Under the pieces are notes generated by a model. It was not told the DNA's origin and did no database searches. It saw nothing but the letters and a program-made list of their open reading frames with translations. This document shows, one piece after another, positions 5,139 through 57,883 of a stretch of 64,000 bases of DNA; positions within the stretch are counted from its first letter, which is position 1; each line of letters begins with the position of its first letter. The position numbers and the translations under genes are program-made. Origin of the DNA: Bispira polyomma (lineage: Eukaryota); NCBI GenBank assembly GCA_965649765.1, contig OZ287748.1, positions 44,020,001-44,084,000 of the forward strand, read 5' to 3'.

Positions 5139-5196
5139 ATGGAGAAGTTGATAATACATTTGTGTTATATGTTGATTTTGTCGGAATCACTGAAAG
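5139..5196 (+). CDS. Gene A signal-peptide exon
   Basis: tttcag acceptor just upstream (implies a 5' UTR exon), ATG at 5139, hydrophobic 19 codons, phase-1 donor G|gttagt. Confidence 0.7.
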
Positions 5197-8100
5197 GTTA
5201 GTGAATCAAACAAATGTTTATATCTCATCTGTAAAATAACTGAAACACTCAAACAGCTTAAGTTTTAAGTTTAATTCCATTTCTAATGCTATATTGTGCA
5301 CTAATGCACTTTTTTGTGACTGAAATAGGATAATGTTTTATACCACTTTATACCACTTAACCAAATATCTTTCGAAAGAGTGGTGTGATCAATGCTAGAA
5401 ATATATATCAAGTCATTGTAGATGTTTAAAGGCTAGCTGATCTGACAAAAGTGTATTTCAGACAAGAGATTTCCACCGCATGCTGGATCTGTAGTGAGCT
5501 CATACATGATAGGTATAGGAGGAGAAATACAAAGGCTTGAGCAAGTCTAGATCAATCCCTGAGTTGTAAAGTTTTATGGTGTGAGATGTAGGCTATAGAA
5601 ACAGGTGAAAAGTACATTCCAAAATTACATCAAATCTTCAAAACATAATTGTTATTTGGGGAAAATACAATTGTAGTTTGTTTGACCACCTGACTATTTT
5701 ACTGGCATGGTTCCTGTTTTGACATAGTAAACCTTTGGTAAGTTTTAACCAGAAAGTTTTGGAGACAAAGCAAGTATATGTTTTCCAACATGGATCTAAC
5801 TTATTGCACTACACTCACATTTAGTAGATAATGCATTGAATAAGGTTTTCAGTGACAAAAGTAAATCATTTTTATGTTGTAAAATTAACCATATGTTGAG
5901 ATACCACAGATATGACGAGTATTCTTACTATTTTGATATGAATATCTTCTAAATTCACACTTTGCTTTGTAAAATAAACTTATACGTAACTTGTTTAGTT
6001 ACAATACAATTATATAAATGACTCAAACTAAACATATGTATTTTATGTAATGTTATATTATGTATATACTTTTATAAACTAGTATAATGACAAAAGTGAT
6101 AGTACATATTGTATTCATATTTATGTATTTTATAGCATGTGATAAATCTTACTGTGAGTTTACAACAACATACACTAAGGACGTAGGATGGACAAATAAA
6201 GTCATGGAATGTTCTAACGCATCACATGTAATAGAGATTATCACAGTTTTCAAAAGTTGTGACTCTTCTTCTGATGTAACATCTGACCAGCTAAACAGTG
6301 TTAAAAGGTTGTGTAATACACATATCAGATGTGATATTTCTGATGATGGCACTACCACGGTATTAAATAGTACTTGCCAGGATAATGTCCAGAACATTTC
6401 AATACAGTATGCATGTAAGCAAGGTGAGTAGAATCATTAATTTATCTTTTACTTTATCTTAGATTAAGCATGAGCAGCAATACAATATTTTTCAAATAGA
6501 AATTGTCAGAATTATTTGATTATAACGCCACATATATTGCTGTGACGTTTTTGATACTTAAACTATCGGCAGGTATATTGTGCATTCAAACAACAATTTA
6601 TCTAGATGCTTCTAATTATAATGCCGATACTGCAGTGATATTTATTGATGGCATAAAAATTTTTAAAAGCATCTTGAGTCACCAGTGATTAAAATCAGCA
6701 GCACCCAATTAACATGACCATATTTTTCAAATCAAGAAACAATTTTCTTTTTAATTGCTGTTATTTATTAACTAAACACATGTCAGATTTCAAGTGTCGA
6801 TTACATATCAACGCTGAACGGAACACATTAAATGTTGCAAGTAAAATACTTTGTACATGGAATTTTTGTAGGCAGTGCTATAACATTTCAGTAAGTGAGG
6901 ATTATTAGCTCGGTCATAAAAGTTTCAAACTGTTAAAAATATCGCCGAAGATCTGTAATCTATGGCTGCAGCTTGAGGGGAGTTTCTGAATCTTTTCGGG
7001 ATTCATTTGTAAACATATCTAACCAGAAAAAAAACACTCTGTAACAGCTTGTTGTGGTTTGTTTTGCCTTAGTGACCGCTCATCCTGCTTTGTCTGTAAA
7101 TTATACATTGACTACAGCTTGTGAGACTAATGTGGGTATACGCCACAGTGTGTGAGCCTGTTACATGTCGTTTTTAAAACTGTAGTGTAGGTGTTCTTTA
7201 ACAATTTTCATCTGAATTTTGTCACAATATCTTGGAAAAAGACTGCAGTGTACCCAGCAGTTGGACAAAAATTGACACAGCTTTCATTGAACCAGATGGA
7301 TCTTTAGTTTCTTTGTGTATAAAATGCTAACTATTGGTTACCACACGACAGATTATCTCTAAAAGCCTAAATTATTTTAGAGTTGTGTATTTTAAGTCAC
7401 TACAGTGTTAAAACAATTAAAATTATTAACAGGAAAAGGAAGTTACGAGACTTGAATATGATCATGATATGTGCACCTTAGAATCCACCTAGATGGAGAT
7501 TTAGCACTATAAAAGTTTTAATAGATTAAAGGAGATCAACAATACAATTGAAAGCCTTATAGTTCAGATAGATTGAGCCACCATTGGGTGGCAACGTGAT
7601 CTTGCATGCTTGCCATGTAGGGCATCCAAGGTGTGGTGTAAGTTGGATGGAATTAGACCAAGTATTCTGCCACCAATGATGGCTTTTTGAACTGATGTAT
7701 ATGCGATTGGCGACAGAGCGGCTACCATAAACAAAACGTAGAATCTGGTGGAAATAAATATATACCCTCATTCCTTATACATGATATAGTAGCCAATTTT
7801 CTGTTATTTCATGCCGACATGGTACATATCAATTAGTACAAGATAAAAACCACAACCACAAATATTGGCACAATTCCGTTGGCCATTTTACGTCAGGCTA
7901 AATTTACAACATTTTTGTACTAGTTTTCAGGCTGTTCTTTGTTAAAACAATGGCACTCATATGCGTTTCTCAATTTCATTTTTGCTTGTAAATTATACTT
8001 ATTGACCAAATCGCCATGTATGTTTGTAATATGGTCATAAATATTATATACTCTTACAGCATATTTGCTTCATATGTTCTTATCCATATTCTTTCAGAGC

Positions 8101-11100
8101 CACAAAGGATGTGTTCAGCATTTACTGTTTCTTCTACTGAAGCAATTAACTTATATAATCCTAATTCATATGTCCCTTTCTACAAAGACAGACAGCGACA
8201 ATGTCAATGTCTTGTAATTCCTGGGATGCAAAAAAAGCAAGTTAAAATCAAATTGGTACAACTTGTATTAGACAACACATATGAGACACTAGGATTCAGC
8301 GGCTATTTTGACCAAAATAGAACAAAATGGGAGAAAGAATATAACACAATAACCTCAGCCATTGATGAAGTTGTAGTAGATGAAAATATGCTAAATGTAT
8401 CCATAACCTTCACGACATGGGGATATTCATCAAATGGATCATTTTATCTTACTTTGGAAGGTAAGAACCTGTATATTTTGTGTTTACAAATATGTTTTGT
8501 GTCTGTGACAGTTGTAGTACTTGTGAAAATAATTATTTTAACATGACAAATTTAATTAGCTTTAAGAGAAAATCTATCCTGCTAAATTTTCCTTTGAATG
8601 CACCAGACTGCAAAATTGTAAGTTTCATCAAGTTAAAGTTTTTGTCATATATATACCCTTATAATGGATTTCTGTGGCGCTATGGTATATACGTCAGTTC
8701 TCGGGTAGTGTCAGTGTAATATTTAATTTTAATTACAATAATTAGACAGTATTATGTTTTTATGTTTTATAAGGAGACGGTCCTCGAACACTCACTTGCT
8801 ACAATGGATCAATTAATGAACAAGACAGTGAAATCACCACATTTGGAACTGTAAAAAATCAAGATAACCCTCAAACAAGTGAGTCATCTACACAGACAAG
8901 TGCAACTATGTTTTCCCCTACTGCGGATATTTCAGTATCCAATACAGCGAATACACAAACAAGTAATAAACCATCAATATCTATAATATTACCATCTACT
9001 CAAAAATCAACATATTCAGTTTTGTTAAAAGGTACACCTGACTATTTTAGTGACGCTTCTTCAAAGATCGATTCCACTGTGAACCACCATTATTAATTGA
9101 CCTCAACTGAAATATTCAATTCACCTGAAAAAAATAAGTGCACTAACACACGGACAGGTATGTAATATAAGCTAAAGAGGCACAGATATTTGAGTCCATA
9201 GATGAAGTCCTTGTCATGAGATTAGATGTGTTCTCAGCCTTGTCCTATTCTAACTAATTTAGGGGTTTCCTTTTTGTGCAATCTGAAAACTCACGTTTCC
9301 AAGTACTATACAACCAAGTTTTATGCTAATGCCTGTTTAACTCCAAACAATGTTTATATTTTGTGATTTTGTTTTGGGTCTCAGGTATTATTGCAGGGGT
9401 CACTGTGGCTCTCGTCATTGTTTGTCTGATTATCACTGTGGTGATTGTTTGCATCTTTAAAAGGTAAAGTCTGCATACTCTATACAGTGGTAATTAATTT
9501 CATACATAAGGAAAGTGTTCAGAAGTGCTTTTGAATACTTCCAGCCGGGGGATTGCATGTTTGTCTGTGTCCATTGGTTTGTTTTCTACAAGGATTACAA
9601 AAAATCTAATGAGCTGATTTTCATGAAATTTGGTTGTGTGATGGGCCATTTTAGAGCACATCTGGGGTTGTGGTGGTATGTGGAAGTTTGCTCTACTGAG
9701 TACCCGTCTAGTTGTCAATTTATTGAGTTTTGTCATTTTGAATGCAGCTTGTTGGAATCTATATATTAATAATAAGAAGGTGCTGTCATAGATACTTTTA
9801 CATGCATTTCCCAATATAACTGTAGTTTATGGAACATCAGTCAGATAAGCACATTCCTGTTTTCAGATATTTAAATTGATACTGAAAATCTAAAGGTGAT
9901 AAATCAACTAGGTGGTGGTAAAACATTAATAAATGCAATAAGAAAATTTCATTATTTATCCCTACCAGCATATTAGCATGTACCAATTATTCATGTTTTA
10001 CCATGCTTGAGGGTATTTATTTATCTGAAATGTTGTACAAATGATATCTTTGTAAACCTTATGATAAATTGTGAAGATAATTGAAATGTTCATGTATCGC
10101 AAATATATCTAATGATACATCCGCAATCAAAGGATTTATTCATTTTTAAATGTCTGATTAAACCGTAAAATATTTATAATCATCATTTGTCACTGTCTGG
10201 TATGTAATTAATGAACATCAGTCTTAAGTGTATAACATATGGTATTTCTTTTGGATTTAAAGGAAGAAAAAATGTCATAAAAACAAGAAACCAGAGCCTG
10301 TTGAAATGATAAATGGACACAATGCAGACGTTAATGACTTTCATAATTTTCCAAGTGGACCAACAATAGATAAATATTTATTGCCTGTACAGAATCTTAA
10401 CAACAATTCAGATGCTCCTGTTACATCAGTTTCACCTAAGGCATTTCTAACAAAACATACCAAGGCCATACAAGAATCAGATTGTGGTGAAAGTCATACC
10501 AGTGGGTTAAATAACATTTATGGAAGTTCTCAGTCCGGTATAAATGAAGGCACTGATTACGAACCCAGTGGTTTTGGGGCAAATAGCAATACAGAGAAAG
10601 CAAAAGACTTGTATGACCAAGCATTACCTGTAAGTCACAACCCTGAAGCATACATCAGTACTGGCTCTGGTATGGAAGAATCCACCTTTCATAAAGCAAA
10701 TTGTATTAAGGACAGTGACAACATAGAGACAGTTAAGGATATGTATGATGAAGCATTGCCAGCAAGTCACAACCCGGAGGCATATAAACCATCTGTACCA
10801 CAGGCCAAGCCGAGTGACCCCCCATACTTTCTGTATGATGACTCGCACAAGAGACCACCAGCAAAAGAAAACTCAGGTACTGACAATAGCGGGAGCTCTA
10901 GAGAAGCTGTCCTTCATCCCACAATTTTAGACTATACCCAATCTTACCTGAAAACTGAAGGGTCGTCTATAAATACTTTAAAACCTTTGGGAGTCAAAGG
11001 TCAATTACCAAATCTGGGTGATTCCTCACAGAATCTACAAGCCTATTCTTACGCTGACACTAGAGGGCGATTCATTGAAGGTGTTACTCCACATATGAGA

Positions 11101-11490
11101 GGTGAAGGGTATGATGTTGAGAAACATGTTGCACCAACCACTGATGACGGTAAATATGAACCTTTTCAGATTCCAGCTGGGAACGACCATTTAGACCATA
11201 CTGGATCCAGAGGTATTATGGCTCCTTATTCCTATGCTGACTGTGGTGGTGTTAAACCTAAACCAGGGTCAACGAAAGATGTTAAACCGGTCAAGGATCC
11301 TTCTAATGAGCATTATGAATCAATGGGTGTTATATATAACCCTCAGACTATGACGGCTAAGGAAGATATAAGCACCACGGAACCTGCAGCTGAATATGAA
11401 GGAATAACCTTTGTTAAGAATGATGCCAAAAAGCCTGTTATAGTGAATGGAGTAGAACTTTTTGAGAACGATGTGTACAGTAAAGAATAG
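5139..11490 (+). CDS. Gene A: spliced type I receptor (signal peptide, SUEL-like, CUB-like, S/T stalk, TM, Tyr-rich tail). Exons 5139-5196, 6136-6423, 8098-8460, 8774-9031 (or to 9157 with internal stop), 9385-9463, 10263-11490; 757 aa via the 9031 donor
   Basis: All junctions are AG/GT with compatible phases (1,1,1,1,2). Exon 1 MEKLIIHLCYMLILSESLK; TM GIIAGVTVALVIVCLIITVVIVCIF followed by KRKKK; the last exon continues in frame into the 394-aa ORF at 10306. Confidence 0.8.
6136..6423 (+). CDS. Gene A SUEL/Gal_lectin-like exon (divergent)
   Basis: tatag|CA to G|gtgagt; 8 Cys with SUEL-like spacing (MECSN..VIEI, VKRLCNTHIRC, ISIQYAC); no YGR or DPC motif. Confidence 0.7.
8098..8460 (+). CDS. 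Gene A CUB-like exon
   Basis: ctttcag|AG to G|gtaag; C..LYNPNSY..Y....CQCLV....VKIKLVQL and terminal VSITFTT...NGSFYLTLE resemble a CUB domain. Confidence 0.65.
8774..9157 (+). CDS. Gene A S/T-rich stalk exon with in-frame TAA at 9094-9096 and two phase-1 donors (after 9031 and after 9157)
   Basis: ataag|GA acceptor; GDGPRTLTCYNGS..TSESSTQTSATMFSPT.. S/T-rich; donors AAG|gtacac and CAG|gtatgt. Confidence 0.65.
9385..9463 (+). CDS. Gene A transmembrane exon (79 nt)
   Basis: tctcag|GT to AG|gtaaag; 25-residue hydrophobic run. Confidence 0.85.
10263..11490 (+). CDS. Gene A cytoplasmic exon, low-complexity tail with 21 Tyr
   Basis: Open frame of 1228 nt starting with stop-transfer RKKKC; motifs YDQAL/YDEAL, YSYAD x2, YEPF, YESM, YEGI, terminal ENDVYSKE. 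Confidence 0.85.
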
Positions 11491-12451: not shown

Positions 12452-13509
12452 TTATGTATATGTTGTATTGAAAGTAGATAACCGTTGAATGTATACATTC
12501 CATGGCACCAACTGATGAATGTGTACATTCAATTGCCATTTTGTCGAATGTGTACATTCAATGATTTATCTGTAGAGAGTATACATTCAACAGCTAAAAC
12601 TGTTGAATGTATACTCTCCATGGGATGAGTTCTTGAATGTGGAGTACAAAAACAAATGTGCAAAAAAATTAAAGAAAGCAAACACATATTACAAAGAAAC
12701 ATTTTTAAAAAATGTTGGGATCTTGATACTGCCATGATAAAAATGAATGAACTTGCTCTCATACACCCCAGTGTTTATACCAGTTTATTGGGAAGATTAA
12801 AGCAGTATATATTTTGTCATTTTAAAGGGCTTCATTAATATCAAAGCCAGGTGATTAAATAGATCACCAATATAATCTGTAGTTGTGTAAGTCCTGAGTA
12901 TAAATAGAAGACCTATTTGTACCCTTGATATACTAATGTGTTTAATTGTTAAGATCACAGGAACACCCCCTAATTTTACAGCTAGGTGATTAAAGAGATC
13001 AACAATGTAATCTGTAGTGGGTAAGTCCTGAATATAAATAGAAGACCTATGTATACCCTTGATATACTGATCGATTTAATTGCTATTAAGATCACAGCAA
13101 CACCCCTACTTTAACAGCAAGGGGATTAAACAGATCACCAATATAATCTGTAGTTGGGTAAGTCCTTAGTATAAAGAGAAGACCTATTTACCCCTTGATA
13201 TACTAATCCATTTAAAGCAATACGTTCTTTCAAGTAAGGATTAACAATACATATATGGTTGAAGAATAAAATCAAACTGATTTGTCCAAATTGAAATAAT
13301 AAAATTATTAAATTGTTTCTACATTCCATGACCTGGACTGTGGAATGTACACTCTCCACAATATTCTCATTAAATCTATACATTCTATGGATGTCAGCTG
13401 TTGAATGTACATGTTCAATGACTGGCCTGTGGAATGTATAGATTCAACAGTTAAGCTATGGAATGTATACATTCAACGGTTATCTACTTTCAATTCAACA
13501 TATACATAA
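12452..13509. mobile_element. Foldback-type non-autonomous element with long TIRs, subterminal gaatgtatacattc repeats and an internal tandem array of about 135 bp
   Basis: ttatgtatatgttgtattgaaagtagataaccgttgaatgtatacattcca is mirrored at 13459-13509; internal units start near 12850, 12985 and 13121. Confidence 0.8.
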
Positions 13510-20704: not shown

Positions 20705-20989
20705 GTATGATAATTGGCCTTGAGTGGTGTGATCTAGATGATGATGTCAGTATTATTTGTACTTCTTCATTAATAAAAGTGACACAAGCGTTCTTTGGCT
20801 ACACAGACAGTTGTGGTAACAGTGAGTACAATGTGAGGCGTGCACAGAATGTGTTACCTTTGCTACAGACTAACTGTGGTGGGTATAAATGTTGTAAAGT
20901 GAAATGGGAGGCTGTAAACTGTACCATGGTCACCTGTGATGGTGAGGAATATTCTGTCAACTACATGAACACTACTTACAGGTGTCGAG
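20705..20989 (+). CDS. Gene B SUEL-like exon
   Basis: ttttag|GT to G|gtaatt; LEWC..IC....IKVTQAFFGY...C....V...LQTNCGGYKCC....C....VNYMNTTYRC. Confidence 0.75.
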
Positions 20990-22366
20990 GTAATTTTTTA
21001 ACATGTGAAATGACAGAATGTATTTAAGACACAACCTAATAAACCTAACCTAAATATAGTGAGTGATGGGTATATTGATATATTTGTCATATTCAAGATA
21101 AGCCCCACTTAACCATTTATCATTTTAAAATTGTTAATGTACCACATATAAACAGAGTAACATTTTAATATTTTTATTATTTAAACACATAAAATTATCT
21201 TATGTCAACTATTGCATGGTGGTCTTTAAAAGATTTTATGTGTTTTTCTAGTTCTACAAATATTCTTAAAACTTTTTGCCAGTTGCATTATATGGAACAT
21301 CTTGAAATATATTCTATCACCTTATATCATTACCAAGAGATGTTATATTAACCTACCTACAGTATGCCTTTTTTAATATACACTTGCTTAAATATTAGTC
21401 AGCTATTTCAATACAAATTACAGATAATACGTGGAATTTATATTTAATTATTTCAGGGACTTCATCATTGACCAGGGGCATTGACACATGTGATGATTAG
21501 ATTATACCAGATACCCCTTTAGTATCAACACAAACACACGTATTATTCTTACTTTTGCTTTTACAATCTATGTGATTAAGAATGATTGGCATCAAGAAGT
21601 GTTTAAACAGTATTCTAGATATGTCTTATGTATCACAAAGTAGCAGCTATATTGGTATGACTGACTCTAACTAAAGGAAATGTTAAATATTGAAACTCAG
21701 TAATACTGCAGTTGTAAGGTATGGATCAGTAATTAATTATCTTTAACATTGCATAGTTTAGATTGTTTTGTAATAGAAATAAGATACATGATACAATAAA
21801 AACCTTATGATTATTCATTATGCTATGCTAACAACCATGTGATAAAATTGATTAGTACTTGACTTATTTTTAAGTATGCCCCTTGTACTAATAACCATAT
21901 CACAAAACTCATCTATACTTGACATATTATTAATCAACATTTCTGTTTACTTCAGGTCGACAACAAATCCCAATGACCAGACTGAGCACATGAACCCCAC
22001 TAGTACATTGTTATCAACTGGCCTGACAGAGGAGATGGAAAATCTAACTCCTTCAACATATTCTTCAGAAAAGTCACTGTCAAACAGCCATGGCTTCGGT
22101 ACAGCTTCAGCTAGTGATGTATCTCAGTACAGAATAAAATGTGAATTTTGTTTCAGTAAAAACGTTGCAAATCATGTTTTAAACTGTCAAAATTACTTTG
22201 CCAGTACAGCCCATTATTTTTATTATTGTACGAGTCAGTATAATTGAATATGTTGCTACAGGGTATTGTGTTTACAATCACACTCTTCTACTGATCAAAT
22301 GAAAAACCTAAATGAGATTACCTGATAGTGTTAACTATTAACTTACATATTCAATATTTATTTCAG

Positions 22367-22454
22367 ATTATACCGCTGTTGCCGGTTTGGGGACTGTGTG
22401 TTTTGCTTTGGTTATTACAATAGTTTTGCTATCTGGATTTATTACCTACAAAAG
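22367..22454 (+). CDS. Gene B transmembrane exon
   Basis: tttcag acceptor, phase 1 to phase 2, ends TACAAAAG|gt like gene D. Confidence 0.7.
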
Positions 22455-27375: not shown

Positions 27376-27380
27376 GTTAT

Positions 27381-35880: not shown

Positions 35881-35990
35881 TAAAAAGCACATGAATTTGT
35901 CTCTATGCATGGATTTGGTTAATGATTGCAGTGAAAGTACTAAACACAATAAAAACTTTTTTAGTTTGAATATTATTATCTTTGTTTTAG

Positions 35991-43000: not shown

Positions 43001-46000
43001 AACAAAAGCAAGCTAGTAATGACTTTTATTATTACCAAAAATACAGTGTCTGAAATAACATGGTGAAACTTACACTCAATATGTAGAAAATGTAATTGAC
43101 AAGTTAATTGAATGTTGGAAAGATGAAAGTACAGTTAATACTGAAAAAATTGTAAAATCAACAGGCGAACCTGAACAGAATGGAAGTAGTAGCTTTAACA
43201 CTACTAAAAGCCTGGTAAGTTATTGTGATGAAAAATATACTCACACTGCATTGTCCGAATTCTTCTCCCAAATGGCTTATATGGTAAGGGCCAGTGAACC
43301 TGTGAACATGATGGTCACTGACATCAATGACAAAGTAAGACTGTAGGTTTTATTGCACTATCAGATACTGACTTTGAATTTCAAGACCCAGATAGGCAAC
43401 CAATACATATTAAAACAGTAGAAGACATGATTACAATTGCACAAATTATAAAACAGACAGAAGTTCCAAACTATTGATCAGCCAGAATACCACTAAGTTC
43501 TGGTCTAAATACACAAGCTTGGATTATCCTGACAAACTATTACTCCAATATATTAGATTTGGATTTCATTTATGTTTGAGTACTCCCCCTAAGTTAGAAA
43601 TTATTAAGGTAAAGAACCATTACTCTGCTTTCCAGTATCCCTATGAGGTTGGGGAATATCTGAAGAAAGAAACTGATTTAGGGGCCATGTTAGGTCCAGT
43701 TAAGGAAGTAAAGACTTCAGACTACCATTGTTCTCCACTTCTAAAAGGATAAATACGATGGTGTTTCATTTGTATTAAAATTTTCTACAATTGATGACAT
43801 CACACAAGCCAAATGTGATACGGAGAACGCCACCTTATTTAAAATTGACATTGCCAGGGCATTCAGGAACCTAAGAGTTGACCCTGTGGGCACAATAAAG
43901 CTAGGCATTTCTTGGCCAGATGAGTATTACGTGGACCCTGTGATTGCATTTGAGTGTGTTCATGGAAGCAAGGCTTTTCAGCGATGTATGAACGCAATTA
44001 CTGCACATATGTGGAAACAGGGCTTTAGGGTATTCGGATACATAGATGATTAGGCTTGTGTCATCCAGAAGGAAAAAGCTATGGAAGGCTTTGATAAGCT
44101 TCACACATTGTTACAAGAGCTAGGCCTCTCAATGAATCAAGTTAAGTTGACTCCACCAACAAATAAGCTTACTTGTCTAGGAATCGATTTTGATATCACC
44201 AAAGGCATTATAAGTATACAAACAGAAAAGCTAAAAAAAGTTGATGACATTTGTATTAAAGTTTTACACAAAAGTATATATCCCACTATATAAGTCTACA
44301 TTTATAAATGTGTTACTCCAGCACGAATTTTTGTGAACAGATTATTGGCTGAATTTTGAGCTGGTCATGTAAATAAGCGTTTTAAAATAACTGATGAAAT
44401 AAAAAATGACCTGCTATGGTTTAAAAAGTTTTTAGAACGATATAATGGCATAAATTTTATTAACCATGATGTCATACCACATGCAGATGAGCTGCACCTA
44501 GACGCTTGCCTTACAGATTTGGGAGGCATTTAGAATGGAGAGGTTTATGCTACACCATTTCATGACATTTTCAACAGAAAATTAACAATTGCACACCTCG
44601 AAATGCTTATCATAATTATCGCTTTATGTGTATGGGCAGAGAAGTGGAGACATAGTAGTCCAATGATCAACTGTGACAACATGACAGTGGTCTGGTTGTC
44701 GAATCACATAAAACCAGAGATAGTTTCCTGGTATTATGCTTGAGAAACATCTAGTTACTAACAGCTACTTATCACATTAATTTAAAAATTACATATAAAC
44801 ATATACCTGGTAAGAAAAATGTTATTGCAGATGCTCTGTCTAGATTATATTCAGACAAGGCATCGGATCAAGACCTCATAAATAAAATAGACAGTAGCTT
44901 TAAATGGCATCAAGTACCAAATGAATGCTTCAATTTTGACCTATCTATATAATTTCAGGTTCTACATGCATCAGCCAGGCTCTGATGTCTTCAGCCAATG
45001 CCAGAATTGACTTAGCCTTAAGACCAAAGAAAACCACAGCATACAATGCACAATTTAAAACATTTATAGCTTCACAGGAAGTTCACAGGAATTGTTACTG
45101 TCAATGTACAGGCAGTTATTGCTTTTTTGGAATATCTGGTGCAGAACCAGCTATCACCAGGAGCAATTAATAATTATCTAGCAGCTCTAAAATTTGTAGC
45201 TTCTAAGCTCAATTGGAATCTTACTCCATTTACATACAATGCAGTCCCATTATTTACTAGAACAGTTGATTCTCATATCTGAAGCTTGTGAAATCCTGGT
45301 TGACCCATTATCTTTTTAGTGGCTTTCTTTGGTTTCTTGAGGCTATCATAGCATAGCTCCTCATTCTAAATATACCTCCATATTAAAATTGACTTTGAAG
45401 ACGCAACAAGTAGAATTTTTTTAACTTCCCACCACCTCCCCTTAGTACCACAGCTAGGATTTGGTCAGTTTGAGGGCCACTTGGCACTCTAACTAAATTG
45501 AGAAATTAATAATAGTGAATGTAGATGTTTAGACGGGGTATAACACGGTTAGTGTCAAATTATGTAGATTGTAATTACTTACATAGTCGTTTTGACGTAT
45601 TACAAAAAGGGTTACTGTAATGCTCCTCTGGCTGTGTGGAATGAGGTTCTGCCTTCTTATACTTTCCTCTGAGTTCATGTCTAGGGTTCCAGAGTAGAAT
45701 AAAGGCTCTTAGAGGTTTAACCAAGGTTGAGATGATGTTTATGGAAACTTATGAAGAATTAAAATTTTCTTCCTTTATATAGAGCACAAGTGTAAAATTA
45801 TCATAATAAATGGTACAGTGACAAGCACAATAATTAAATAGTTAAAAGCTATGAAGCCACAGTACTGAAGTAGGAATGTATCTTGTGTGACATGCATGGT
45901 GTAATCTCACATAAAGTGTCAAGTAAAATGTATCTTGTGACAGAAAGGATTAGCCACTCAACTCAATTTAGTGCAAGGTTTGAGGTACGATAGATTTAGG

Positions 46001-49000
46001 ATATGGTTTGTGTGTCACAAGTAAATTGCATTAATATGACCAAATAGCCCAGAACAGGGAAATTCTTTTGTTAAAGCAATTGTTTGAAAATGCCTATTTT
46101 GTTTGTGTATGTGTGTGTCAGTTTGGAACTCTTCATTGTATGACCTATACAATGCTTTAAAGCATACATATCAATTCGCATAAATTTTGCTTTATTCTTA
46201 AAATATATTCTTTAACTTTATTCTAAAAATGTATTATTTAAAGTTTTTTTAATGTTTTTTTAATCAAGTTCAATAATTTGTTGTCAGTGTAGTCACCACA
46301 AAAATAACTTATGCACACCCGAGTGTTAAAGTTCATTAACACAAATATTTTTGGGGCATATATGTATTGCCCAGTATTGCCCAGTAAAACCCAGGTTAAC
46401 CTGGGTTATCCCGCTGGGCTGGGAAATACTCATAAAACCCGGGTTTTACTCAACCCTGGGTTTAACTCTCATCTGCTAGGCGATTTGGTGTCCAAAGCCA
46501 GGGGTTGCAAAAAACAGATTGTATAAGCAAAAGAAATTTTAAAAAAGGGTTTTGTTATACCAGTATTAATGTAAAAAATCAGGGCATATGTAAAGTCTAG
46601 ATAGGTAAACTATGATCATTTGAAGTGTGTATGTCAGGAATGACACTACAACGTATGTATATAAATTGTTACAAACGTAGAGAGTGTGTGATCAAATGTG
46701 TAGAATGACGTGGTTAAAGTGTGAATTGGACATAACATAACATAACATATTGCATTTGCTATTGCGCATTTTTACAATTCTGTTTCAAATGCGCATTTTC
46801 ATGAAAGTCTACTTGTAATACTTGTCAAAGAGATATTTCTTAATTTTTTTCCTAAACAGTTTTAGATTGTTACAGTCCTTGATGTTGCAGGGTAACTCAT
46901 TCCACAATGATGGGCCGCTCACACTGAATGATCCTGATGCAAAAGTGTGTCGGCTTGTTTTAGGTACAAGAAGATTGTTTGAGAAAGTCGAGGATCTGAG
47001 TCCTTCTCTAAACACTGGTTTTTGAGTCAGCAGGTTTTGCAAATATTCTGGAGCATTTCCTTGCAGGCAATTGTATACAAGCACCATAATTTTGAATTTA
47101 ATCCTGGCAGCAATTGGTAGCCAGTGAAGTAGCTTTCTGGATTCAGTCGAGCTTTCATATTTTGTCCTGTTAAGTACTAATTTGGCAGCTATATTTTGAA
47201 CTCTTTGCAATTTCTTGATTGAGTTTTGTGGTAGACCAAACAGTACACTATTACAAAAATCGAAATGTGACATTACTAAGCCTAGAACTAGTGTGTGTGT
47301 TGCTTCCATTGTAAGGGTGGATCTGATGTTTCTAATTCGGTGAATGTTTAGCATAGCTACTTTGCATTTATGGGTAATGTGTTGTTTGAAGTTGAGGTGC
47401 TTATCTAAATAGACTCCTAGATACTTAATGTCAGCACTTGAATTAACATCTTCACCATTCACTTTTAAACTATGTAAGAAACATTTTCAAAGTTGCTTTG
47501 GATGGCCAAAGAGAATGAATTCAGTTTTAGAGCTGTTTATTTTAAGACGGTTGGAATCCATCCACAATTTTATATCCTCAGCACAATTTTCTAATGATCT
47601 AAGAGTGGTGGCTTCAGCTGAGATGTTGTTGGCTGAGAATGACAATTTGATTGCATGGTCGTCTGCATATCCGTGCGGTGACATATCAGCTGGAACTACG
47701 TATTTCAGGGTACTTGCATAGCTAGAGTAGAGAGTTGGACCCGCACAACTGCCCTGTGGTACTGAGAAATCTAGTGGCGTTTTATTAGAATAGCTTTTAC
47801 CTATGTTCACACAGCATGATCTTGGGTTTAGATAGTTATTGAACCATTTCAGAGCACTTCCAGATATACCATATTGTTTGTTTAAAACTTTAAGTAGGAT
47901 TTCATGATCAACTGTGTCGAATGCAGCTGATAAGTTGATCGCCATCATTGTAGTTACTTTTTGATGTTCCATGGCCCACAAAATGTCATTTGTTAATTTT
48001 ACCAGTGCAGTCTCACAGGAAAAACCCTGTCTGTAAGCAGACTGATAGTCAGGAAAGAGACTTTGAGTTTCAACATGGTCATTGAATTGTTCCAGAACTG
48101 CCTTTTCTAAAACCTTGGATAAAAATGACAAATTACTAACTGGTCTGTAGTTACACAATTCTAAGTCTAGTCCTTTTTTCTTGAGAAGTGGTCTGATAAC
48201 TGCGTTCTTCCATGTACTTGGAAAGGTACCGATTTGCAATGACTTATTGATTATGAGAGTGATGTGTTTAATAATGGCTCCAATAACTTTTTTTAAAACT
48301 TTGGTTGGAAGAGCATCTAATGCACAAGTTTTGCTAGCCATGCCACAGATTATACTATGTACTTCATCTTCACTTAGGGGAACAAAGTTATGTAGTATTG
48401 TACAATCATTTTGTTGTGGCTCAAATTTGGGACAACTTTCTAAATCTGTTCTAATTTTCTTAATTTTGTTCAGGAAGAAATCAGTAAATTTATTGGCTAG
48501 ACTATCATCATCAATGTTGTCAGGAAAAGGATTTTCTTTGGGGCCTCCAGTGTTCGGTGATCAGTTTATAAAGTTTTTTTGAGTCTTTACCACATTCTTC
48601 AATCTTTTCACTTAAGATTAAAATTTTGGAATTTTTTAACATATACTTGTACTTGTTTCTTTCTATTTTTAAAGCTTTCAGAGTGTCTGGTGTTCGATAT
48701 CTTCTCCATATTCTTTCTCTTCTTCTCACTTTCTGTTTTTGTGATTTGATTTCTTCATTATACCATGGAAATTTTCTTCTAGGTACAATTTTTTTTTCTA
48801 CCTGTTTGTCTAAGCATAACTTCAAATTATCTTCAAAAAATTCAACTACATTATCAATAGTCATTGACTCATCAGTAGGCAGTTCAATTTTGCTTAAATC
48901 AATGTATAACTTGTCCAGTTTTCTATTCCATTTTCTCACTGATTTTACTTGACTTTTTGGGCTATTTTTGTGACATCTTAAATAACAAATTACAGCACGA

Positions 49001-52000
49001 TGATCTGACACAAATTTTCCTGGAACACATTTGAATATTAAGTCACTGTCAAATTTGCTAATTACTGCATCTAATATGTGTCCAGCAACATGAGTATAAA
49101 AACTAACATGTTGTTTATATCCCAGTGAGTTAATTATTTCATTCAGTGTTTCAGTGTCATAGCTTTGCTTGTCATTTAAATGAATGTTGAGGTCACCAAG
49201 AACAATTGAGTTTGTATTGTCTTCTATTGCTAGGTCAGAGAGTTTATCACTGAATTCATTTAGAAAGGTAGCATTTGTTATTGGATGTTTCTTTGAGTAT
49301 GGAGGATGATATATTGCATTTAGCGTGACTACCTTTTGTGGAAGAGAAACCCTCCATTTGGCAAACTGAAATGACTGTAGTTCACACTCATTAAGTTTCT
49401 TAACTCTATACTCTTTCTTATAAATAAGTACCAGACCCCCACCTCTTGATTCTCTGCTAACAGCATCAAGGCAGTATCCACGTTTTGTCAGTTCACAGGT
49501 ACTTATCCAAGCATCCACCTCATCAGTGTTTTTAGCTAGCCAGGTTTCAGTCACAACACACAGATCTATGTTTAAATCATTGATGTATTCTGCGAGTATA
49601 ATATCCTTGTTTTTAATAGACTGGGCATTTATGAGCAGTATACTGATGTTTTCACTGCTATTTTGTCCTGGCTCATTATCTATACATATTTCACATTCTG
49701 ATACAGTAGTTGTATTTGTATCCAGGTATTTCTGTTTATTGCGGTTTTTTCCTGCTCTTTTTCCTCTTTTGTTCAGCCTATTTTTTTCTTATGACTTTTA
49801 CTGTATCCAGTGATAATGACTTTGATGTTGTGCTTGATTGTACTTTTTGTCTAATCTCTAACAAATCAGATTGGTTGTACCGTACATACATTAAAAATGA
49901 ATAGTACAGAGTCTGCTACAGGCTATTGTATTTATCACACAAGTACACATCAATCTCATATGCTTACCACTGCTTATAAACTGGGTTTACACAGAAATAT
50001 TTATCCATTATTTATCTGAAATATCCTTTTTTTGTCTTCTCAAAATTGTATTTACTTTACTCCTGGATCCTTTATGAACACCATATTGTAAAATCATAGG
50101 ATAATGACTAATATTTCCAGTAACAATCAGCTGATTAAGTGATAATTTTCCCAGTGCAGCCACTCAGAGTGCAAGATGGGGGTAAATTCATACATTAATG
50201 GCCTGTTTATAAGCAATAAATGTCGCAACACGAAGAGTTCAATTTCAACCAAAAACACCGTTTATGGGTGGTTTATGGCTGTTTGGAGTTGTCGAAACCC
50301 AAATGTACTTATAAATAGATAGAACACCAATAATGGTTAATAACAATAATACTGATACACTGTTTTAGTTTATAATTTTATTGTGATGGTTGAAATATAC
50401 ACTTTTTGATAGAAATTATGTTAAATGTAATGCAAAGTTTATTTTGCCAATTTTATTGTGTCGTATGAATAGCTATTATGGATGCTATGATGCTATTATT
50501 GTTTTGCCTAGTCCTTTTTTTATTAGGCTTGTCCTGGTTTTATTATTGTTAGCTTTGCCTAGTTGGGGCTGTAAACATTTGTCATGTTTAAATAAAAATT
50601 TTAAGCATTTTACCTTATATGTAATATCATGTACACAAACTACTAACATGTAAAAAATAAATCCTCAAAGTGAAATCTTTTACTATCTCTGTGTTACTGA
50701 ACTTCCACCACAAACTTGCAAATTTGAATTCATAACTTTGACCTTGTATATTAACCTTAACAAAGGGGACTGACAAACAGAGGCAATATATACATCTATT
50801 TTTAAATCACTATTCAGATATACACAGAGGCAATATATACATCTATACTTTTAAATCACTTTTCAGATATACACATCCACAACTAGTTATTAATCAAATA
50901 TGCAATTCTACTGTCTATAAGCAGTTCATGAACCATGATATAAATTGTAGTAACAAGTAGCTGATATATGTGAACATAAGGTATGTGAGGTTCCATTTAT
51001 TCATTATCCACTGTGACATAAGTATAACGTTTTCGTGGCTGATACGGGCCGGGTGATACAATGATCTGTATTAATCGGAGGCCGTGAATGTGTATATGAA
51101 CACTGTAGTATTTACTAGATTTTCCAAGGTTTTATTCTCAATTTAAGCAATATTTAAGGTAGAAAGTTATTAAAAGTGTGACTAAAATAAAATATGGACC
51201 TTAAACAACAGAATTGTCTATTATACTCGATTTTTAGTATTTTATAAATACAAGTTTGAAGCTAATTCTATAAAGTGGCTGTCCCACTATCCCGATAATA
51301 GCTCCTGACTGTCCCGATTGTACAATCAAGAGGCAATCGAGAGAACAATCGGGACATCCAGGAAGTTGTCCCGACTTATTAGTGTCAATCGGGACACTCG
51401 CGGTCACTTGTGCAAATTCCTAACATGTTAGAAAACCTCTACGATTGAATGATATGCAGCCGATCGATCGGGGTCGATCAGGGTTAATCGTTAGCTGCTA
51501 ACGTGTTATCTTAACCTTATAATGACTTATCTTTACGATCGACATCTAAATTGGGAGAAAGAAATTGCCATTTTGAAAAGGAATAATCGTCTAATCCCTC
51601 CTGATAAATCGCAAAGAACCCCCGACTGTAAAGAAGATTTATCGCCCAATCCGTCTCAGTTGGTCGGGATTATCCTCCCGATTGGTCAGGAGCATTACAA
51701 ATAATTGTCTACTTGTCCAGAGTTACCGTGTCATATGTTAACAAGATAAAGATAACTCTGAAAATGTCATGAGGATAAGTCGTTACCAAGTTCCTGATTG
51801 TAAAGATAACTCGAGAGAAGCAGCCAATAAGTCGTTAGGAAGTCCCGACTGTAAAGATAACGAGGATTAACAATAGGTCGGGTGGAATAAAAGATAACTC
51901 GGGAGTGAAAGCGATGACTCGGGAAGCAATGGGAGATAGGAGCAGACTGTTTAAAAGGAAGAAGGCACACTCATTTTTCATCAGAATCATCCTAGCTTTC

Positions 52001-55000
52001 AGAGAGTCAACATCCACTTGCAATTTTTATGATTTTTAATTATAACAGGCTTTTATTTCTTCTTGTAAAGAAAAAGTGAGCCTAGTTAAATAAATATTGC
52101 AATAATGCCAGGAAAAAAGGAGTTACAAAGAAAGGTAGGGTACAACCAAGAGGAGGAGGAGAAAGAGTTTAAAGGGAGAGATACAGATGATGAGGACTCA
52201 CAATTTTTACAACAGTTGAACCGGCCTACTCTGAATGTAGCGGAAATAGAGTACACCCAGGAGACCCAGGATACTCAGGATACCCAGCATAATAGGGATA
52301 CCCCGGACAGTGAGGTGGCGGGCTTGAGTAGGAAGCAGAAGAAGGGGAAGATGAAGACTGTGTTGTTAACAGATGAGCAGGAGAAGGCTGTGGTCGACTT
52401 GAGTGACTCTACAATGAGCGTGATCCACTGTATAAAGACAATCAGAGGAAGGTCCTGCTGTGGGAGTAGTATTGCTCAACCAAGGGATTGGATTACATAT
52501 TAGTCATGAAGTGATTCCAGTCCCAGAGGACTATCTTTGGCAAGCTGAGTGTTCACAAGTCTGGGCAAGCTGCCCCAGAATTGACCAAGCGACAGCAGTG
52601 GTTGAAGACCAACTTCTCGTTCCTCAAGCCACCAAGCATGTGAAACTGGTCAGCCCATCACCCAGCAAACAGTTTTCAAACCCACCATTGAATACCTCCA
52701 CATATGACGACACAGCACACAACAACTCATCTGTTTTCAGTTTTTCAGATGTTTTAACACAGACTTGCCGCCGCATATCGGATATGAGCAACTCCCGAGT
52801 CCAGCAACATCCGTACTGCTTTTAATACTACTCAGAGATCAGCAGCAACAGCATGGAACGTGTTAACTACAACCAGCCAGCGATCAGCAACAACAACTTG
52901 GAATGCTTTAACCAGCCAGCAATCAGCAAACACAGTTTGTAGCGCCGCTTCCACTGCCACTACCAAACATCACCTCCTGGCAGTCTCCTGGCAGCCCTTT
53001 TGAGACCGCCATTCGCCGAACTTCCGGGTCCTTTTTAAGACCACCCGAATGTTGTAAGAACTTTGTGTGAGTTGTTTTGTTGAAAATCCCAAACAAACAG
53101 ATTACACAGTCCCCTCAAAAAACAATTTGCATACATAGACAGAACTTATAAACCACTGGCCAGAGTTTAAACCCCAAATAATAAGCCCAAACAAACAAAT
53201 TACACTGTCTCCTCAAAAACAATTCACACACAGAACTAATAAAAAGCCCAAATAATTACCAACTTGAAAAAAACACCTGTATTTCCTTTGCAAATTGTAA
53301 CTTTTAAGAAAGACAAAGAAAAAAAATAATTTAGAAAAAAAAGTAGAAACTCTTTGTAAGCCCATAATTTGACAATTGTGCAATACAAAGAGTTTGTCAT
53401 TGACAAAAAATCATTTCCTGAAATGTCACTTTCCCAAACAAGTGGTCACACCACTGACAGGGTTTGAACCCAGTCCCTTTACCAAAAATGTGGTCACACC
53501 ACTGACAGGGTTTGAACCCATGACCTCTGACACTCAATAGCCCATTAACCTATCTATTGCTGGGGAATCTTCAGATTGTATTATTTGGGTGGCCAAAGTA
53601 GGAATTTTTTATGTCAGTGATAGGCCTTGGGTTCAAATCTCTTTCAATAAGGAGTATATGAAGCTACCCAACAACAATATTAGAGCTGGATAACCATCTC
53701 CCACTTTCTGCCATCCATACTGCCACAATACCACAGGCTTTGCAACAGAGAGTTTAGTAATACCAATGTGTCTGGCTTCTGGTATTTCTTTCTAGTGTTC
53801 TTTTTCTTCCCAGGTGGATCTTAAACTGCTGATATCTGCTACTTATTGTTCTCGTATCAGACTCCAAACGACTACATTGCATATATTTTTTCAACCCTAC
53901 TCTGGTCACAAGTAACCTTTTTGACATATTTTGGATTTATGAATCATCCTGCAAAGTACAGCTCTTCTTTGTCTATCTCTAGACTTTTAAACTATATAAC
54001 CTGAGGATCATACCTGTCAAATACATCCACAAGACTGTTGGCACTATATTTGCTGTGTAAAGGTTTTTCATACATGTCATACAAGTTGTTAAAATGTCTA
54101 AAAGAATTACTTACTACTGACTGTATAATTACTCAAAATTTCTTATATATACAGTTTTCTGTCTGGGAAAATACATGTACATGTAACACTGTGTTTTTGC
54201 CAGCAAGTTTCTCTGGCTTATGACCTAGTTCCGACTTGTCAGTCTTTCTCATTGTTACATCTTCATGAAAGTAAAACAGTGACACAGCTCCTTGAGTGCA
54301 ATCAACAAACTCCTTGATTACATCCTCCCTTCTTGAAGATATTGACAAAGCTCTTCTAAAAACCATTATGGATCTATATTATTGTTACAGTGATTCCTTT
54401 AGGAATCCTAAGATTTATCATTTTGTTCTTACTTAAAAAACTCTCACAGTGCAACATGGTACGGAGGCATAAATACTCTTCTAACCAGTGCAGAGATTAT
54501 CTATCGCTATTAACCATCTTTTCATTCCCTTTCTGATAAAGTACTGCACTCATACCAAATGTTTGCACTCAGGAATCATGTGAAACATTAGAAATCACGA
54601 TTGGATTTGATTCAACATCAAAAGGATTAGTCATCCTGATGTATGCATGTTTGATAAGCTGTTGTCCACCATATTAATAAACCTTCCAATAACAAAATAA
54701 GGCATGTTGTGTGTATAAGGCTCTAGGATTTTAAACTTCCAAATCATAAGCCTTTTCTGGGTTTTGTCTCTCGTTTAATTGTGATAAAATACGCAGATGT
54801 ACAAAACGACACAACACAAACTAATTGAGATTAGTCGATTAAACATACTATAAAACATTTCAGGTGGCACAAATGTATATGCATTGTTTTTACTGAATGT
54901 TATTAAGTGATAATGCATGCCCAGTCCTGGACATTTGTGGCTGAAGTTGTAGTAAGAATTAGACAATTTTTATCATCCGTGGAAATTGGGTTTGTTCGGC

Positions 55001-57883
55001 GGCATCTGTTGTAACAATTTGAGTGTGTTAAAATCTAGAAACAAACATACAACAAAAACCATCTATAAAACCCGCCAAATTCTATTGGGTTTTGATGTTC
55101 ATCACCAAAGTCAGTAATAGAAGATGCGATTTAAACAAATAGTAATACTAATTTTTTGTTTAGTTTCTTATTTCATTTTACAACAAAAACATAGAAATGA
55201 TTTAGTTAAGTGAGCTATTTTACAGAAGATCTTATCACAGTATTTGCCAAAAGTTTATATAGTCCACATGAGATTTTAGACATTTATATTGTTAAATTTT
55301 ATTATTTTTATGTAGCTGGTCAGAGAACTCGTGATATTACAATAAATATTTGCAGTGACTGGGTCTTCCCAAACACAACACAATCGCCTTCCACTTTGCA
55401 AGCAGCATTAAGCACGTAAGCTATGACCTTATTTTTTGAAGTAAAAATGATCTTTAATATTTATTAATACAAAAATTCTTATTTAATATTACATTGATAT
55501 GATAATAAACTTTTATCTTACATACAAATGTTGTCAATATTCAGTTAAATAACATTTAAATTTGTGGAAGGGCTAAATTTGGTTTTATGTGTCAGTTTCA
55601 TATACCACAGCAAATGTAAAAATCGCTTTTGTTTAACTCTTCAAACTCATTTTTGGTTACTAATTTTATTGATAGCAAATCTACTGTAATTCATAAATAA
55701 TGCATCAATGGCTGTGAAAAATAGTTGTTGAAATTTTATAGAATTATAATTCCGAACAAACAATATGCGAAAAGCATCTTGCTTATTTACTGATATGTTT
55801 TTATTATTTTATTACATATTTGCTCTTAATTACAGATTCACTTCAAGTATAGTAGCTTCGATTGGTGTTGATACATCACCATTCATGAAATTTTATAGAA
55901 TTTATAATATGATGCTTTGATCATTCTTAAGTGGCCATGTGAGCAAATTCAGCCAGCTCAGTTACTTTAATATGCTTTCCTATACAATTTCTCTCAATTA
56001 CAGAGTCACTTCACACACGACCGAAAATTTCATGTCCACAATTGTCAACACAAGAAAATAATTTTAATTTATCTTAGTATAGTACATTAACTACTTTAAC
56101 TGGCGTTTATATGCTTATAATTAATATTTTCATTATATCCTTGCTCTCAATTTACAGATTCACTTTAAGCACAAAAGAGAAAGCAATGACCACATTATCA
56201 ACTAATTTGGATACATCAAAGTATAGCACTGCAACTCCTTCAATTGACTTTGATACATCACCATTCAGTTTAAATCAAACAGGTTCTAAACTGTCAACTG
56301 CTGAAACATCAACATTTACACATACACCTGGTGGCAGTACTGACCAATCAGCCTCTTACACCATTCCTCATGTGGCAAATAAAGAAAAAGGTATATATTA
56401 CATTTGTGTAATAAGATTTTTATACTAATGTAAAGTTAATAACTTTAAATACTTTGTACCAAACTATGACTTACACATTTTGTTTGAATAGTCTAATCTA
56501 ACCTAGCCTTTTTTGCATTAAATCCTCTGGGAGAACTCAAAGCGCGAGAACATCCCAATCATAGGTAAAATAATAGGCATTAATAAGAGGTCATCAATAA
56601 AGGACAAGCATTTAGCCAAAGAAAAAGGGAACTATATTACAAAGGCTTTGTTTAAAAGATAAGATTTAAGATGTTTTCTAAAACGTTGCAATGTTCTTTG
56701 TTGTTCTGATATGTTATAGAGATTATTCATGAAATTGGCACTATGCATTCCATCAGGTCATGACGCATTCTGCTTATACTGTTGATATGACGAAATATAT
56801 GCATTTACACTTCAGGAGTCCATATCTCAATTTGTTTAAAGATGTTTTATTCCACAAAAAGTAAAAGAAACCTTTTTTAAATATTCTTTATGTATAAAAA
56901 TCACTGTACCGAATTATCAATAGTGAAGCATTTAGCATATTTTAAATGTTGTGTGCTTCAATAAAATACAATGAACTTAGTTTTAACTGGATTCAGATGC
57001 AAATCATTTGACGCCATCTACTCCAAAGATATTGCCTATAATAATCATCTGTTGAGTAGCTTAAAATTCCAGCTGTATATAATGGTATTTGAATGCTACA
57101 CACTACTGTCTCATCATTTGTAAAGTAGATTACATTAGTGTAAATACATTAAATCAGATATAGAGAAACATGTGATGTGATAAAATACTCAATGACTAAG
57201 TGTCTGTCTCTAGCTCTAGGAGAGTTATTTCTACACTGTTGTTTAATGTCATATGCAATAATGTTTAGGTGTTATAGCTGGTGTTGTATCCTGTGTGATA
57301 CTGTTGCTGATATGTTTTGCAACTGGAGCAGCCTACTGGTACAAAAGGTATACTCCTTACAACTCATTTATAACAAGATAGGGGATCAGTCATTCATTAA
57401 GATATGAAGGAAAATATTTGATTAAGATATCTGTCTTTAAGTATTTAGAGCACACATTATTTTAGCAAATGTAAATTAATGCTAATAAATAGGCAATCAA
57501 GATTATGTTGTTTTTTAAGGCGACAGAAAAAGAACAGCCCACAAGAACATACATATGAAAACTCATCTGCTCCAAGCATAGAGGTGACCAGTTTTGATAC
57601 AGTTAAACATTCAAGTGAACTTGCAGATATAACATCAACATGCATTGGCAGACCAAATGAGACTGCAGAAGCTAAGAAGGATGGAGAGTATGATGATATC
57701 TGGATACATCATGCCGAAGAAGCACCAACAAGAACCAATGGAATTGTTCCAGAAAATAATGCTGAAGAATCAGTTGTGAAAAACATTGAAGGTCACTATG
57801 CTCCTCTAATAACATATGAAAATGTACCCAGAAATACACAAGATAACATTTTAACCAGTGAGTATCAGATGTTGAAAAAATAG
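40028..57883 (+). CDS. Gene D: intact type I receptor (signal, SUEL-like, linker, S/T stalk, TM, ITIM-bearing tail), 378 aa. Exons 40028-40082, 40250-40555, 55316-55415, 56158-56390, 57269-57347, 57520-57883
   Basis: Six AG/GT exons, phases 1,1,2,1,2, total 1137 nt with no internal stop. Signal MDRQFLCLICCLLFGFLL; TM GVIAGVVSCVILLLICFATGAAYWY then KRRQKK. Confidence 0.8.
40250..40555 (+). CDS. Gene D SUEL-like exon
   Basis: gtag|CA to A|gtaagt; SC..LIC....VQVTTAMLGY...C....DVSLLFQRTCDGYGNC....C....NSLHMVFNC. Confidence 0.75.
40969..45500 (+). mobile_element. Ngaro/DIRS-type tyrosine-recombinase retrotransposon (gag-like, RT, RNase H, truncated YR) with direct repeats
   Basis: Direct repeat of about 57 bp at 40969-41026 and 45371-45427; gag Zn finger CKLFNNGKC..HRCWYC..HPEFKC; RT FKIDIARAFRNL and GYIDD; RNase H LDACLT, HLEML, NCDNM, HIPGKKNVIADALSRL; YR start ALRPKKTTAY, and FFGFLRLS. 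Confidence 0.85.
46731..49700 (-). mobile_element. L2/CR1-group LINE, near-complete ORF2 (APE plus RT) with few frameshifts and a (TTATG)n 3' tail
   Basis: INAQSIKNK, VTETWL, VLGDLNIH, VSDHRAV, NYRPVSNL, INLSAAFDTVDH, VPQGSCAGP, YADD, LHWLP; cataa repeats at 46731-46750. Confidence 0.92.
50776..50874. repeat. Tandem duplication of about 48 bp
   Basis: acagaggcaatatatacatctat..ttttaaatcact.ttcagatatacac occurs twice. Confidence 0.85.
51274..53060 (+). mobile_element. Left half of a second PIF/Harbinger family element with a decayed Myb/SANT-like gene (52105 to about 53050)
   Basis: Left end taaagtggctgtcccactatcccgat; many cccga/atcg subterminal motifs; LTDEQEKAVVD and a KSGQAA.ELTKRQQWL block matching the 28943 gene. 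Confidence 0.7.
53442..53520. repeat. Direct duplication gtggtcacaccactgacagggtttgaaccca
   Basis: Two exact 31-bp copies about 48 bp apart. Confidence 0.85.
57269..57347 (+). CDS. Gene D transmembrane exon (79 nt)
   Basis: tttag|GT to AG|gtatac; same length, phases and G-x-IAGV start as the gene A TM exon. Confidence 0.85.
57520..57883 (+). CDS. Gene D cytoplasmic exon with YENS, YDDI, YAPL, ITYENV and SEYQML
   Basis: ttttaag|G phase-2 acceptor; open to TAG at 57881-57883. Confidence 0.85.

Follow-up and report, generated by a model that had tools for sequence, protein, structure and literature searches.

What kind of protein is encoded by a run of cysteine-rich exons that recurs along one strand of the genome of Bispira polyomma? 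We approached this question in a window of 64,000 nucleotides (C1 44020001-44084000, contig OZ287748.1; assembly size 1.035 Gb), within which four loci, A to D, were rebuilt exon by exon from the sequence. All homology searches were likewise made exon by exon, and the joined gene models were translated for a frame check only. The loci belong to a tandem family of about 26 genes for type I membrane proteins, evolving through duplication, unequal crossover and loss—and, by analogy with known systems, probably serving as recognition receptors.

A tandem array of two gene classes

Genome searches placed all close relatives of the four loci in a single array at C1 43.43-44.15 Mb (~715 kb), with every unit on the plus strand. 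The array contains 22 SUEL exons, 18 CUB-like loci, 15 short (D-type) tails and 5 long (A-type) tails; ordered along C1, these make up about 26 units, 19 of them CUB-bearing (the last being A) and followed by seven CUB-less ones (the first being B), and the window straddles the border between the two classes. The first-pass annotation of this DNA had described a cluster of four; searching the genome and relatives for copy number, as it advised, enlarged this to the ~26-unit array and brought to light the same architectures in a second species. Its placement of the four loci on one strand held, with A to D all on the plus strand, flanked by GT-AG sites and in the phases proposed, and so did its view of their state: D is intact, A conditional, B disabled and C partial.

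Our gap-free reading covers 264 kb, or 10 units, the units 3' of the window being known from 3-kb loci only. Two of the ten are fully intact, namely D and an upstream long-tail gene (C1 43955490-43972078, ~825 codons), and the other eight carry stops, frameshifts, a truncation or, in one case, a lost acceptor. These lesions, together with the roughly 26 tandem copies, agree with the birth-and-death dynamics that had been suggested for the locus. The expansion of the SUEL family is genome-wide, with 146 PF02140 matches in the whole genome, many of them in tandem arrays on other chromosomes. Further large tandem arrays of SUEL exons lie at C2 98.68-98.91 Mb, at C4 13.9, 26.9, 36.9, 88.2 and 99.3 Mb, at C3 83.9 Mb and at C8 45.7 Mb. 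Two genes of the assembly score above the cut-off for PF16915, the linker family of giant haemoglobins, which makes an annelid source likely, although linkers are also present in a few further spiralians; the molluscan haemocyanin domain gave no match, a result that carries little information.

Gene architecture

There are two exon plans. Gene D illustrates the CUB-less plan, shared by B and C, and gene A the CUB-bearing one.

Gene D
40019-40082, plus strand: signal exon, phase 0-1
40250-40555, plus strand: SUEL-fold exon, phase 1-1
40556-55315, plus strand: intron 2, 14.8 kb, with LINE reverse transcriptase and endonuclease at 46809-49554 on the minus strand
55316-55415, plus strand: short stalk exon, phase 1-2
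56158-56390, plus strand: Ser/Thr (S/T) stalk exon, 39% S/T, phase 2-1
57269-57347, plus strand: transmembrane exon, 79 nt, phase 1-2
57520-57883, plus strand: short (S) tail exon with two YEN sites, HYAPL and terminal YQML

Gene A
5139-5196, plus strand: exon 1, signal peptide, phase 0-1; paralogous exons lie upstream
6136-6423, plus strand: SUEL-fold exon of class I with 8 Cys, phase 1-1
8098-8460, plus strand: CUB-like exon, 363 nt, phase 1-1; structure model of low confidence
8774-9157, plus strand: S/T-rich stalk exon with an in-frame TAA at 9094; paralogues conserve the donor at 9157
9385-9463, plus strand: transmembrane exon, 79 nt, phase 1-2
10263-11490, plus strand: cytoplasmic exon of the long (L) tail, 409 aa with 21 Tyr, including YDE/YDQ repeats, YESM, YEGI and terminal NxxY

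The frame of D is open from 40019 to 57883, and the product comprises 381 or 390 aa according to the tail acceptor used (57520 agrees with the paralogues; 57493 is likewise in frame). Its second intron has been expanded by transposons, the equivalent intron of paralogue L026 measuring ~0.55 kb; a false join across these elements can be ruled out, since L026 holds the same exons across the shorter intron. Each unit has one SUEL exon, and a single transmembrane exon is followed by a tail and a stop, which bears out the predicted single-pass architecture. The transmembrane exons of A and D proved exactly as first described, both being 79 nt long in phase 1-2, starting with G(I/V)IAGV and ending in K-AG directly before the gt of the donor. 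The supposed single exon plan had to be given up, since a CUB-like exon of 363 nt is added in A and the stalk is split over two exons (phases 1-2 and 2-1) in B and in D. Nor are all ectodomains very divergent, those of B and C being 71% identical.

Folds of the ectodomains

A SUEL profile built from 14 of the Cys-rich exons matched SUL-I, a rhamnose-binding lectin of solved structure, with an E-value of 5.8e-9; because the same exons are also kept in about 20 paralogues, we do not regard them as products of chance. The SUEL exon of C was modelled with AlphaFold (predicted local distance difference test, pLDDT, 70) and compared by Foldseek, as the first-pass annotation had recommended. The best matches were latrophilin lectin domains, CSL3 and SUL-I (TM-scores 0.58-0.66, probability 1.0, E only 2e-3), and the top 13 listed matches all had SUEL-type or similar folds; the atlas comparison of the SUEL exon concurs (TM-score 0.70). 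Profile and model together confirm the predicted SUEL fold. None of the four exons reached the Pfam PF02140 gathering score of 31.4 bits (C 26.9, B 22.5 and A 14.4 bits; D gave no match), and the motifs YGR, DPC and KY[LI] were found in none of the SUEL exons of A-D. SUL-I contacts its sugar through Glu7, Asn71 and Asp76 (PMC10377782); in an alignment to SUL-I, the segments that carry its rhamnose-binding residues are missing from A-D. With the YGR, DPC and KYL segments missing, rhamnose binding by these domains appears unlikely, and "lectin" therefore denotes here a fold and not an activity.

For the additional exon of A (8098-8460), 21 of 30 neighbours in the language-model atlas were CUB domains (up to 0.94), at a recognition value of 2178, under 2300. 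No Pfam entry (PF00431 included) or PDB sequence matched it, and a HMMER search of the CUB-like profile against 1.84 billion representatives returned zero matches. We interpret the exon, with moderate confidence, as a divergent CUB-like domain. Two long-tail genes (L015 8659-8895 and L019 8831-9052) have partial duplicates of the CUB-like exon directly ahead of the complete one, and so do L035 and L037.

Two conserved cytoplasmic tails

The short tail holds two YEN sites and a terminal pair, YEN(I/V)-x12-Y(Q/E)(M/I)L; in the long tail, YDE repeats are accompanied by YESM and YEGI, and NxxY stands at the terminus. The cluster uses at least two conserved tail types, both without a kinase. In D, the terminal short-tail pair forms two consensus ITIMs (immunoreceptor tyrosine-based inhibitory motifs; shuffle P 0.004, post hoc); the long tail contains neither an ITIM nor an immunoreceptor tyrosine-based activation motif (ITAM). 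A FAM176 match was found in neither tail, and the transmembrane helices have no central charged residue. Searching with the tail profiles for annotated full-length relatives yielded none, and no name is on record in protein collections.

Codon models gave a nonsynonymous-to-synonymous rate ratio (omega) of 0.55 for the CUB-like exons and 0.47 for the long tail, both fitting much better than omega = 1, so that these exons can be taken as constrained coding sequence. For the SUEL sets the values were 0.72, 0.59 and 1.33, of which 1.33 does not exceed 1 significantly, and for the short tail 0.74.

Relatives of the long tail were detected in one ENA assembly (54% identity) and in one Logan run (34%). 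On the ENA contigs, CUB-like, stalk, transmembrane and long-tail exons follow in the same order as in A; the assembly also contains a SUEL-CUB-stalk-transmembrane-short-tail gene, as well as a B-type transmembrane exon and tail downstream of a long-tail gene, and the order of long-tail gene and then B-type gene is kept in this second species. Across species, 13 of the 21 Tyr of the long tail and all five of the D short tail are invariant, against ~14% and 21% of other positions, respectively (the corresponding Fisher values ignore relatedness). The Tyr-motif tails first proposed are thus supported, and constraint on them is indicated by the long-tail omega and by the Tyr sites kept across species. 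Two long-tail genes of the ENA assembly, on two contigs, share 41% identity in the CUB-like domain, 55% in the stalk and 89% in the tail, with collinear downstream DNA at 80-88%; they are either alleles or paralogues. Also in the second species, at L046 18111-18606, a tail of 102 aa comes after a B-type transmembrane exon; its sites resemble ITIMs and switch motifs (ITSMs), and it is possibly a third tail type. A third, more distant long-tail relative, P0003 (Logan SRR20820736), keeps the Tyr motifs and has extra repeated YQE(I/V) sites.

Heads are exchanged between tails

CUB-bearing ectodomains can be joined to one tail type or the other, and genes of the D class, which lack CUB, carry the short tail as well. 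Moreover, a short-tail gene (C1 43864871) and the intact long-tail gene that lies upstream of the window share a duplicated block of 26 kb, 83-97% identical, which takes in upstream DNA together with the signal and SUEL exons; the likeness ends right after the SUEL exon. Between these two genes, synonymous divergence (dS) is 0.017 in the SUEL exon, 0.36 in the CUB-like exon and 0.35 in the stalk. The CUB data reject sister status of the pair (approximately unbiased test, p 6e-6), and the SUEL data reject the pairing seen with CUB (p 3e-7) as well as a grouping of the long-tail genes in one clade, in tests whose groupings were picked after the distances were known. The genes of the cluster thus combine heads and tails in shuffled form.

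Genes A, B and C and the elements between them

In A, a weak donor after 9031 in the stalk exon would bypass the TAA at 9094 and give a product of 757 aa. An intact A made through this donor is possible and disfavoured, since paralogues read through to the 9157-equivalent donor rather than splicing at a 9031-type one. The stop is no assembly slip, either: DNA contigs from all three public runs carry it, unbroken across the site. Considering both the splicing of the paralogues and the presence of the TAA in all three runs, A probably represents either a nonsense allele or a gene for a secreted form. The stop would yield a secreted ectodomain, as would skipping of the transmembrane exon in L007, the short-tail gene at C1 43864871; both products are possible soluble decoys.

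Around A, an exact 43-nt duplicate of SUEL-exon segment 6272-6314 lies 1.7 kb upstream, at 4545-4587, amid unrelated DNA and looks like a recent templated insertion. Intron 2 of A contains a very high-copy repeat at 7430-7920 (read depth >1000x that of its flanks), and an element at 12452-13509, which has terminal inverted repeats of 55 nt and a tandem repeat of 136 nt in its interior, is probably a non-autonomous DNA transposon.

Gene B
20018-20060, plus strand: probable signal exon with degraded donor; tentative
20705-20989, plus strand: SUEL-fold exon, CUB-less class; PF02140 E 1.5e-4, below cut-off
21457-21539, plus strand: short stalk exon, interrupted by TAG at 21498, a site that reads W in paralogue L025 and in D
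21956-22118, plus strand: S/T stalk exon, 3' end uncertain
22367-22454, plus strand: transmembrane exon, 88 nt, phase 1-2, third transmembrane type
23040-23190, plus strand: candidate decayed tail exon with stops and one acidic YxxL, in a block conserved in two downstream paralogues; tentative

Gene C
25827-25869, plus strand: signal exon, phase 0-1
35991-36278, plus strand: SUEL-fold exon; PF02140 E 6e-6
37819-37895, no strand assigned: apparent deletion junction between C and D, from homology to paralogues L024 and L026

B is disabled by the TAG at 21498, the poor donor of its signal exon and its decayed tail. C lacks its 3' half, no stalk, transmembrane or tail exon being found downstream of its SUEL exon. 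Near 37820-37895, homology shifts from the intron of a C paralogue to the region upstream of a D paralogue, which looks like a deletion. The C SUEL donor and the first D stalk acceptor are both in phase 1 (25827-55415), and the head of C could for this reason conceivably splice onto the stalk, transmembrane exon and tail of D. The first intron of C holds a Harbinger-like DNA transposon (28100-33531, with DDE_Tnp_4 at 32090-32575), of which a copy with 78-81% identity lies at C1 43.935-43.940 Mb. Decayed elements at 34900-35830 and 41100-45500 look DIRS/Ngaro-like by eye (gag-, reverse-transcriptase- and recombinase-like pieces); Pfam gave no match for those pieces that were tested.

Relation to known receptor systems

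This kind of locus is already known; its scaffold is not that of EVA-1, latrophilins, rhamnose-binding lectins (RBLs) or Alr. Like the present cluster, Hydractinia Alr consists of clustered single-pass genes with a domain per exon and many pseudogenes; its tails are of ITAM or ITIM type (bioRxiv 10.1101/2022.03.04.482883), which the Tyr-motif tails here may resemble. Alr ectodomains, however, are Ig and Fn3-like instead of SUEL with or without CUB-like, and Alr tails are too diverse for alignment, whereas two conserved types are present here, where the link to allorecognition is one of analogy. The Biomphalaria PTC2/GRC loci are also clusters that encode single-pass proteins, divergent and comparable in size (PMC7494358); PTC2 has no known domain except the transmembrane one and was mapped to parasite resistance, whereas our cluster has identifiable domains and is known from sequence alone. 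Paired immune receptors are encoded by linked genes whose binding domains are nearly the same and whose tails differ, formed through duplication and conversion (PMC13358205)—a layout also seen in the block-sharing pair described above, with its SUEL dS of 0.017 and a short-tail copy that has lost its transmembrane acceptor. They have another fold, and their activating partners combine a short tail with DAP12, whereas both tails here are long and contain Tyr.

Among SUEL proteins, EVA-1/EVA1C is likewise single-pass and protein-binding (PMC4133157), but has two lectin domains and a short or FAM176 tail and is a conserved gene; the cluster combines one SUEL domain, an optional CUB, a mucin stalk and a tail unmatched by FAM176 in a large, unstable array. 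RBLs (SUL-I, CSL3) and the latrophilin lectin domains share the fold and the core cysteines. RBLs, however, are secreted and retain the YGR, N..FGDPC and KYL segments that the cluster exons lack, and latrophilins continue into a GAIN and seven-transmembrane (7TM) part, whereas the cluster genes end with one transmembrane exon, a tail and a stop. The single SUEL domain, the missing FAM176 match, the lack of GAIN/7TM and the ~26 units also speak, as first supposed, against one-to-one orthology to EVA-1/EVA1C or latrophilin. We found no description in the open-access literature of a scaffold with one SUEL, optional CUB, mucin stalk and two tails, nor the family under any protein-collection name.

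A model of function and its alternatives

The turnover of the cluster, its head swapping and its likeness to Alr, PTC2 and paired receptors lead us to favour, with a probability of roughly 0.6, kinase-less recognition receptors that evolve by birth and death, with a part in immunity or allorecognition as our best guess; expression, ligand, partners, the sign of each signal and the immune role are all things that we infer. Such a receptor would comprise a signal peptide, one divergent SUEL head, a CUB-like domain in the 5' class, a mucin-like stalk, one transmembrane helix and a kinase-less tail. The head would bind a foreign or conspecific surface ligand, probably a protein or a non-rhamnose glycan; binding would cluster the receptors, a Src-type kinase would phosphorylate the tail, and SH2/PTB proteins would dock there. 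By established SH2/PTB consensus rules, the short tail would suit Grb2 (YEN) and a tandem-SH2 enzyme (the terminal YENI/V-x12-YxxL pair), and the long tail a multi-adaptor scaffold with YDE of Nck type, YESM of PI3K type and a terminal NxxY of PTB type, YEGI also being offered. A head moved from one tail to the other would then couple a single specificity to two outputs, much as vertebrate paired receptors do. A more specific proposal is that of a paired-receptor system built from SUEL and CUB in an invertebrate, probably an annelid: highly polymorphic heads would be recombined between two ancient tails of opposite output and would serve to recognise self/non-self or parasites, in a system independent of the paired receptors of Ig and C-type-lectin type. 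This proposal is a doubtful one, which we advance as a tentative suggestion.

Were the SUEL heads to bind an endogenous protein, as in EVA-1 and latrophilin, with the tails serving development or wiring, the genes would instead be adhesion or guidance co-receptors. EVA-1 binds MADD-4 via its lectin-like domains and requires its tail (PMC4133157). The latrophilin lectin domains among the best structural matches, the sugar motifs missing from A-D and the conserved terminal NxxY would all fit. Adhesion and guidance genes are usually few and conserved, however, and about 26 copies, most of those read broken, with omega of 0.5-1.3 and shuffled heads, make this unlikely. Fast-evolving recognition outside immunity—of gametes, larval settlement cues, partners or symbionts—would leave the same signature of fast head turnover with conserved tails, and SUEL proteins are known in eggs (PMC8878817); the joining of shared heads to two alternative Tyr tails and the large share of pseudogenes, on the other hand, lie nearer to Alr and paired-receptor loci, and we would not expect this explanation to hold. 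That the array is mostly decaying through transposon-driven unequal crossover, the mosaic being a neutral by-product and few copies mattering, would accord with lesions in eight of ten units, transposon-filled introns and high omega; it is distinctly improbable, given that both tail types, their Tyr and the order of long-tail and B-type genes persist in a second species and that omega of the CUB-like and long-tail exons is well below 1. The splice models were read from DNA alone, and the second intron of D is 14.8 kb long, so the exons could belong to other genes, such as secreted lectins apart from the transmembrane and tail exons. Exon order, phases and splice sites nevertheless recur in paralogues and in the second species, the paralogue of D spans the same exons with a 0.55-kb intron, and the upstream paralogue has an open frame of ~825 codons—which leaves very little room for such an error.

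Several results weigh against the favoured reading of immune or allorecognition receptors. Strict ITIMs are not kept, short-tail paralogues having an ITSM or an x12 ITAM-like pair where D has ITIMs, and the tails contain no x6-9 ITAM. The model of the CUB-like exon is unreliable (pLDDT 38; best Z ~7, including TMPRSS6 219-329). In the short-tail member of the block-sharing pair, the acceptor of the transmembrane exon has changed from AG to AT (L007 574-576, C1 43880574), the ectodomain being otherwise open; this near-identical copy may be a dead recombinant, and because its acceptor AG is lost, the pair displays the process of swapping and not a working pair. In no domain was whole-domain omega significantly above 1, and hence no positive selection was detected, in sets that are small and include probable pseudogenes. 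Across species, the identity of the long tail (54%) is only slightly higher than that of SUEL (44-46%), and outside the motifs of the short tail it falls to 35%. Finally, the public runs that hold the locus number three, from two samples of one study and thus from one individual or two, and all are DNA and none RNA.

Beyond a handful of snails and bivalves, self/non-self discrimination in spiralians is poorly known. The present locus is compact, its domains are defined, its two tails are conserved and head swapping can be seen; it offers direct candidates for recognition genes. If the two tails do signal oppositely, the logic of paired receptors would have evolved once more, with a third kind of protein as its scaffold.

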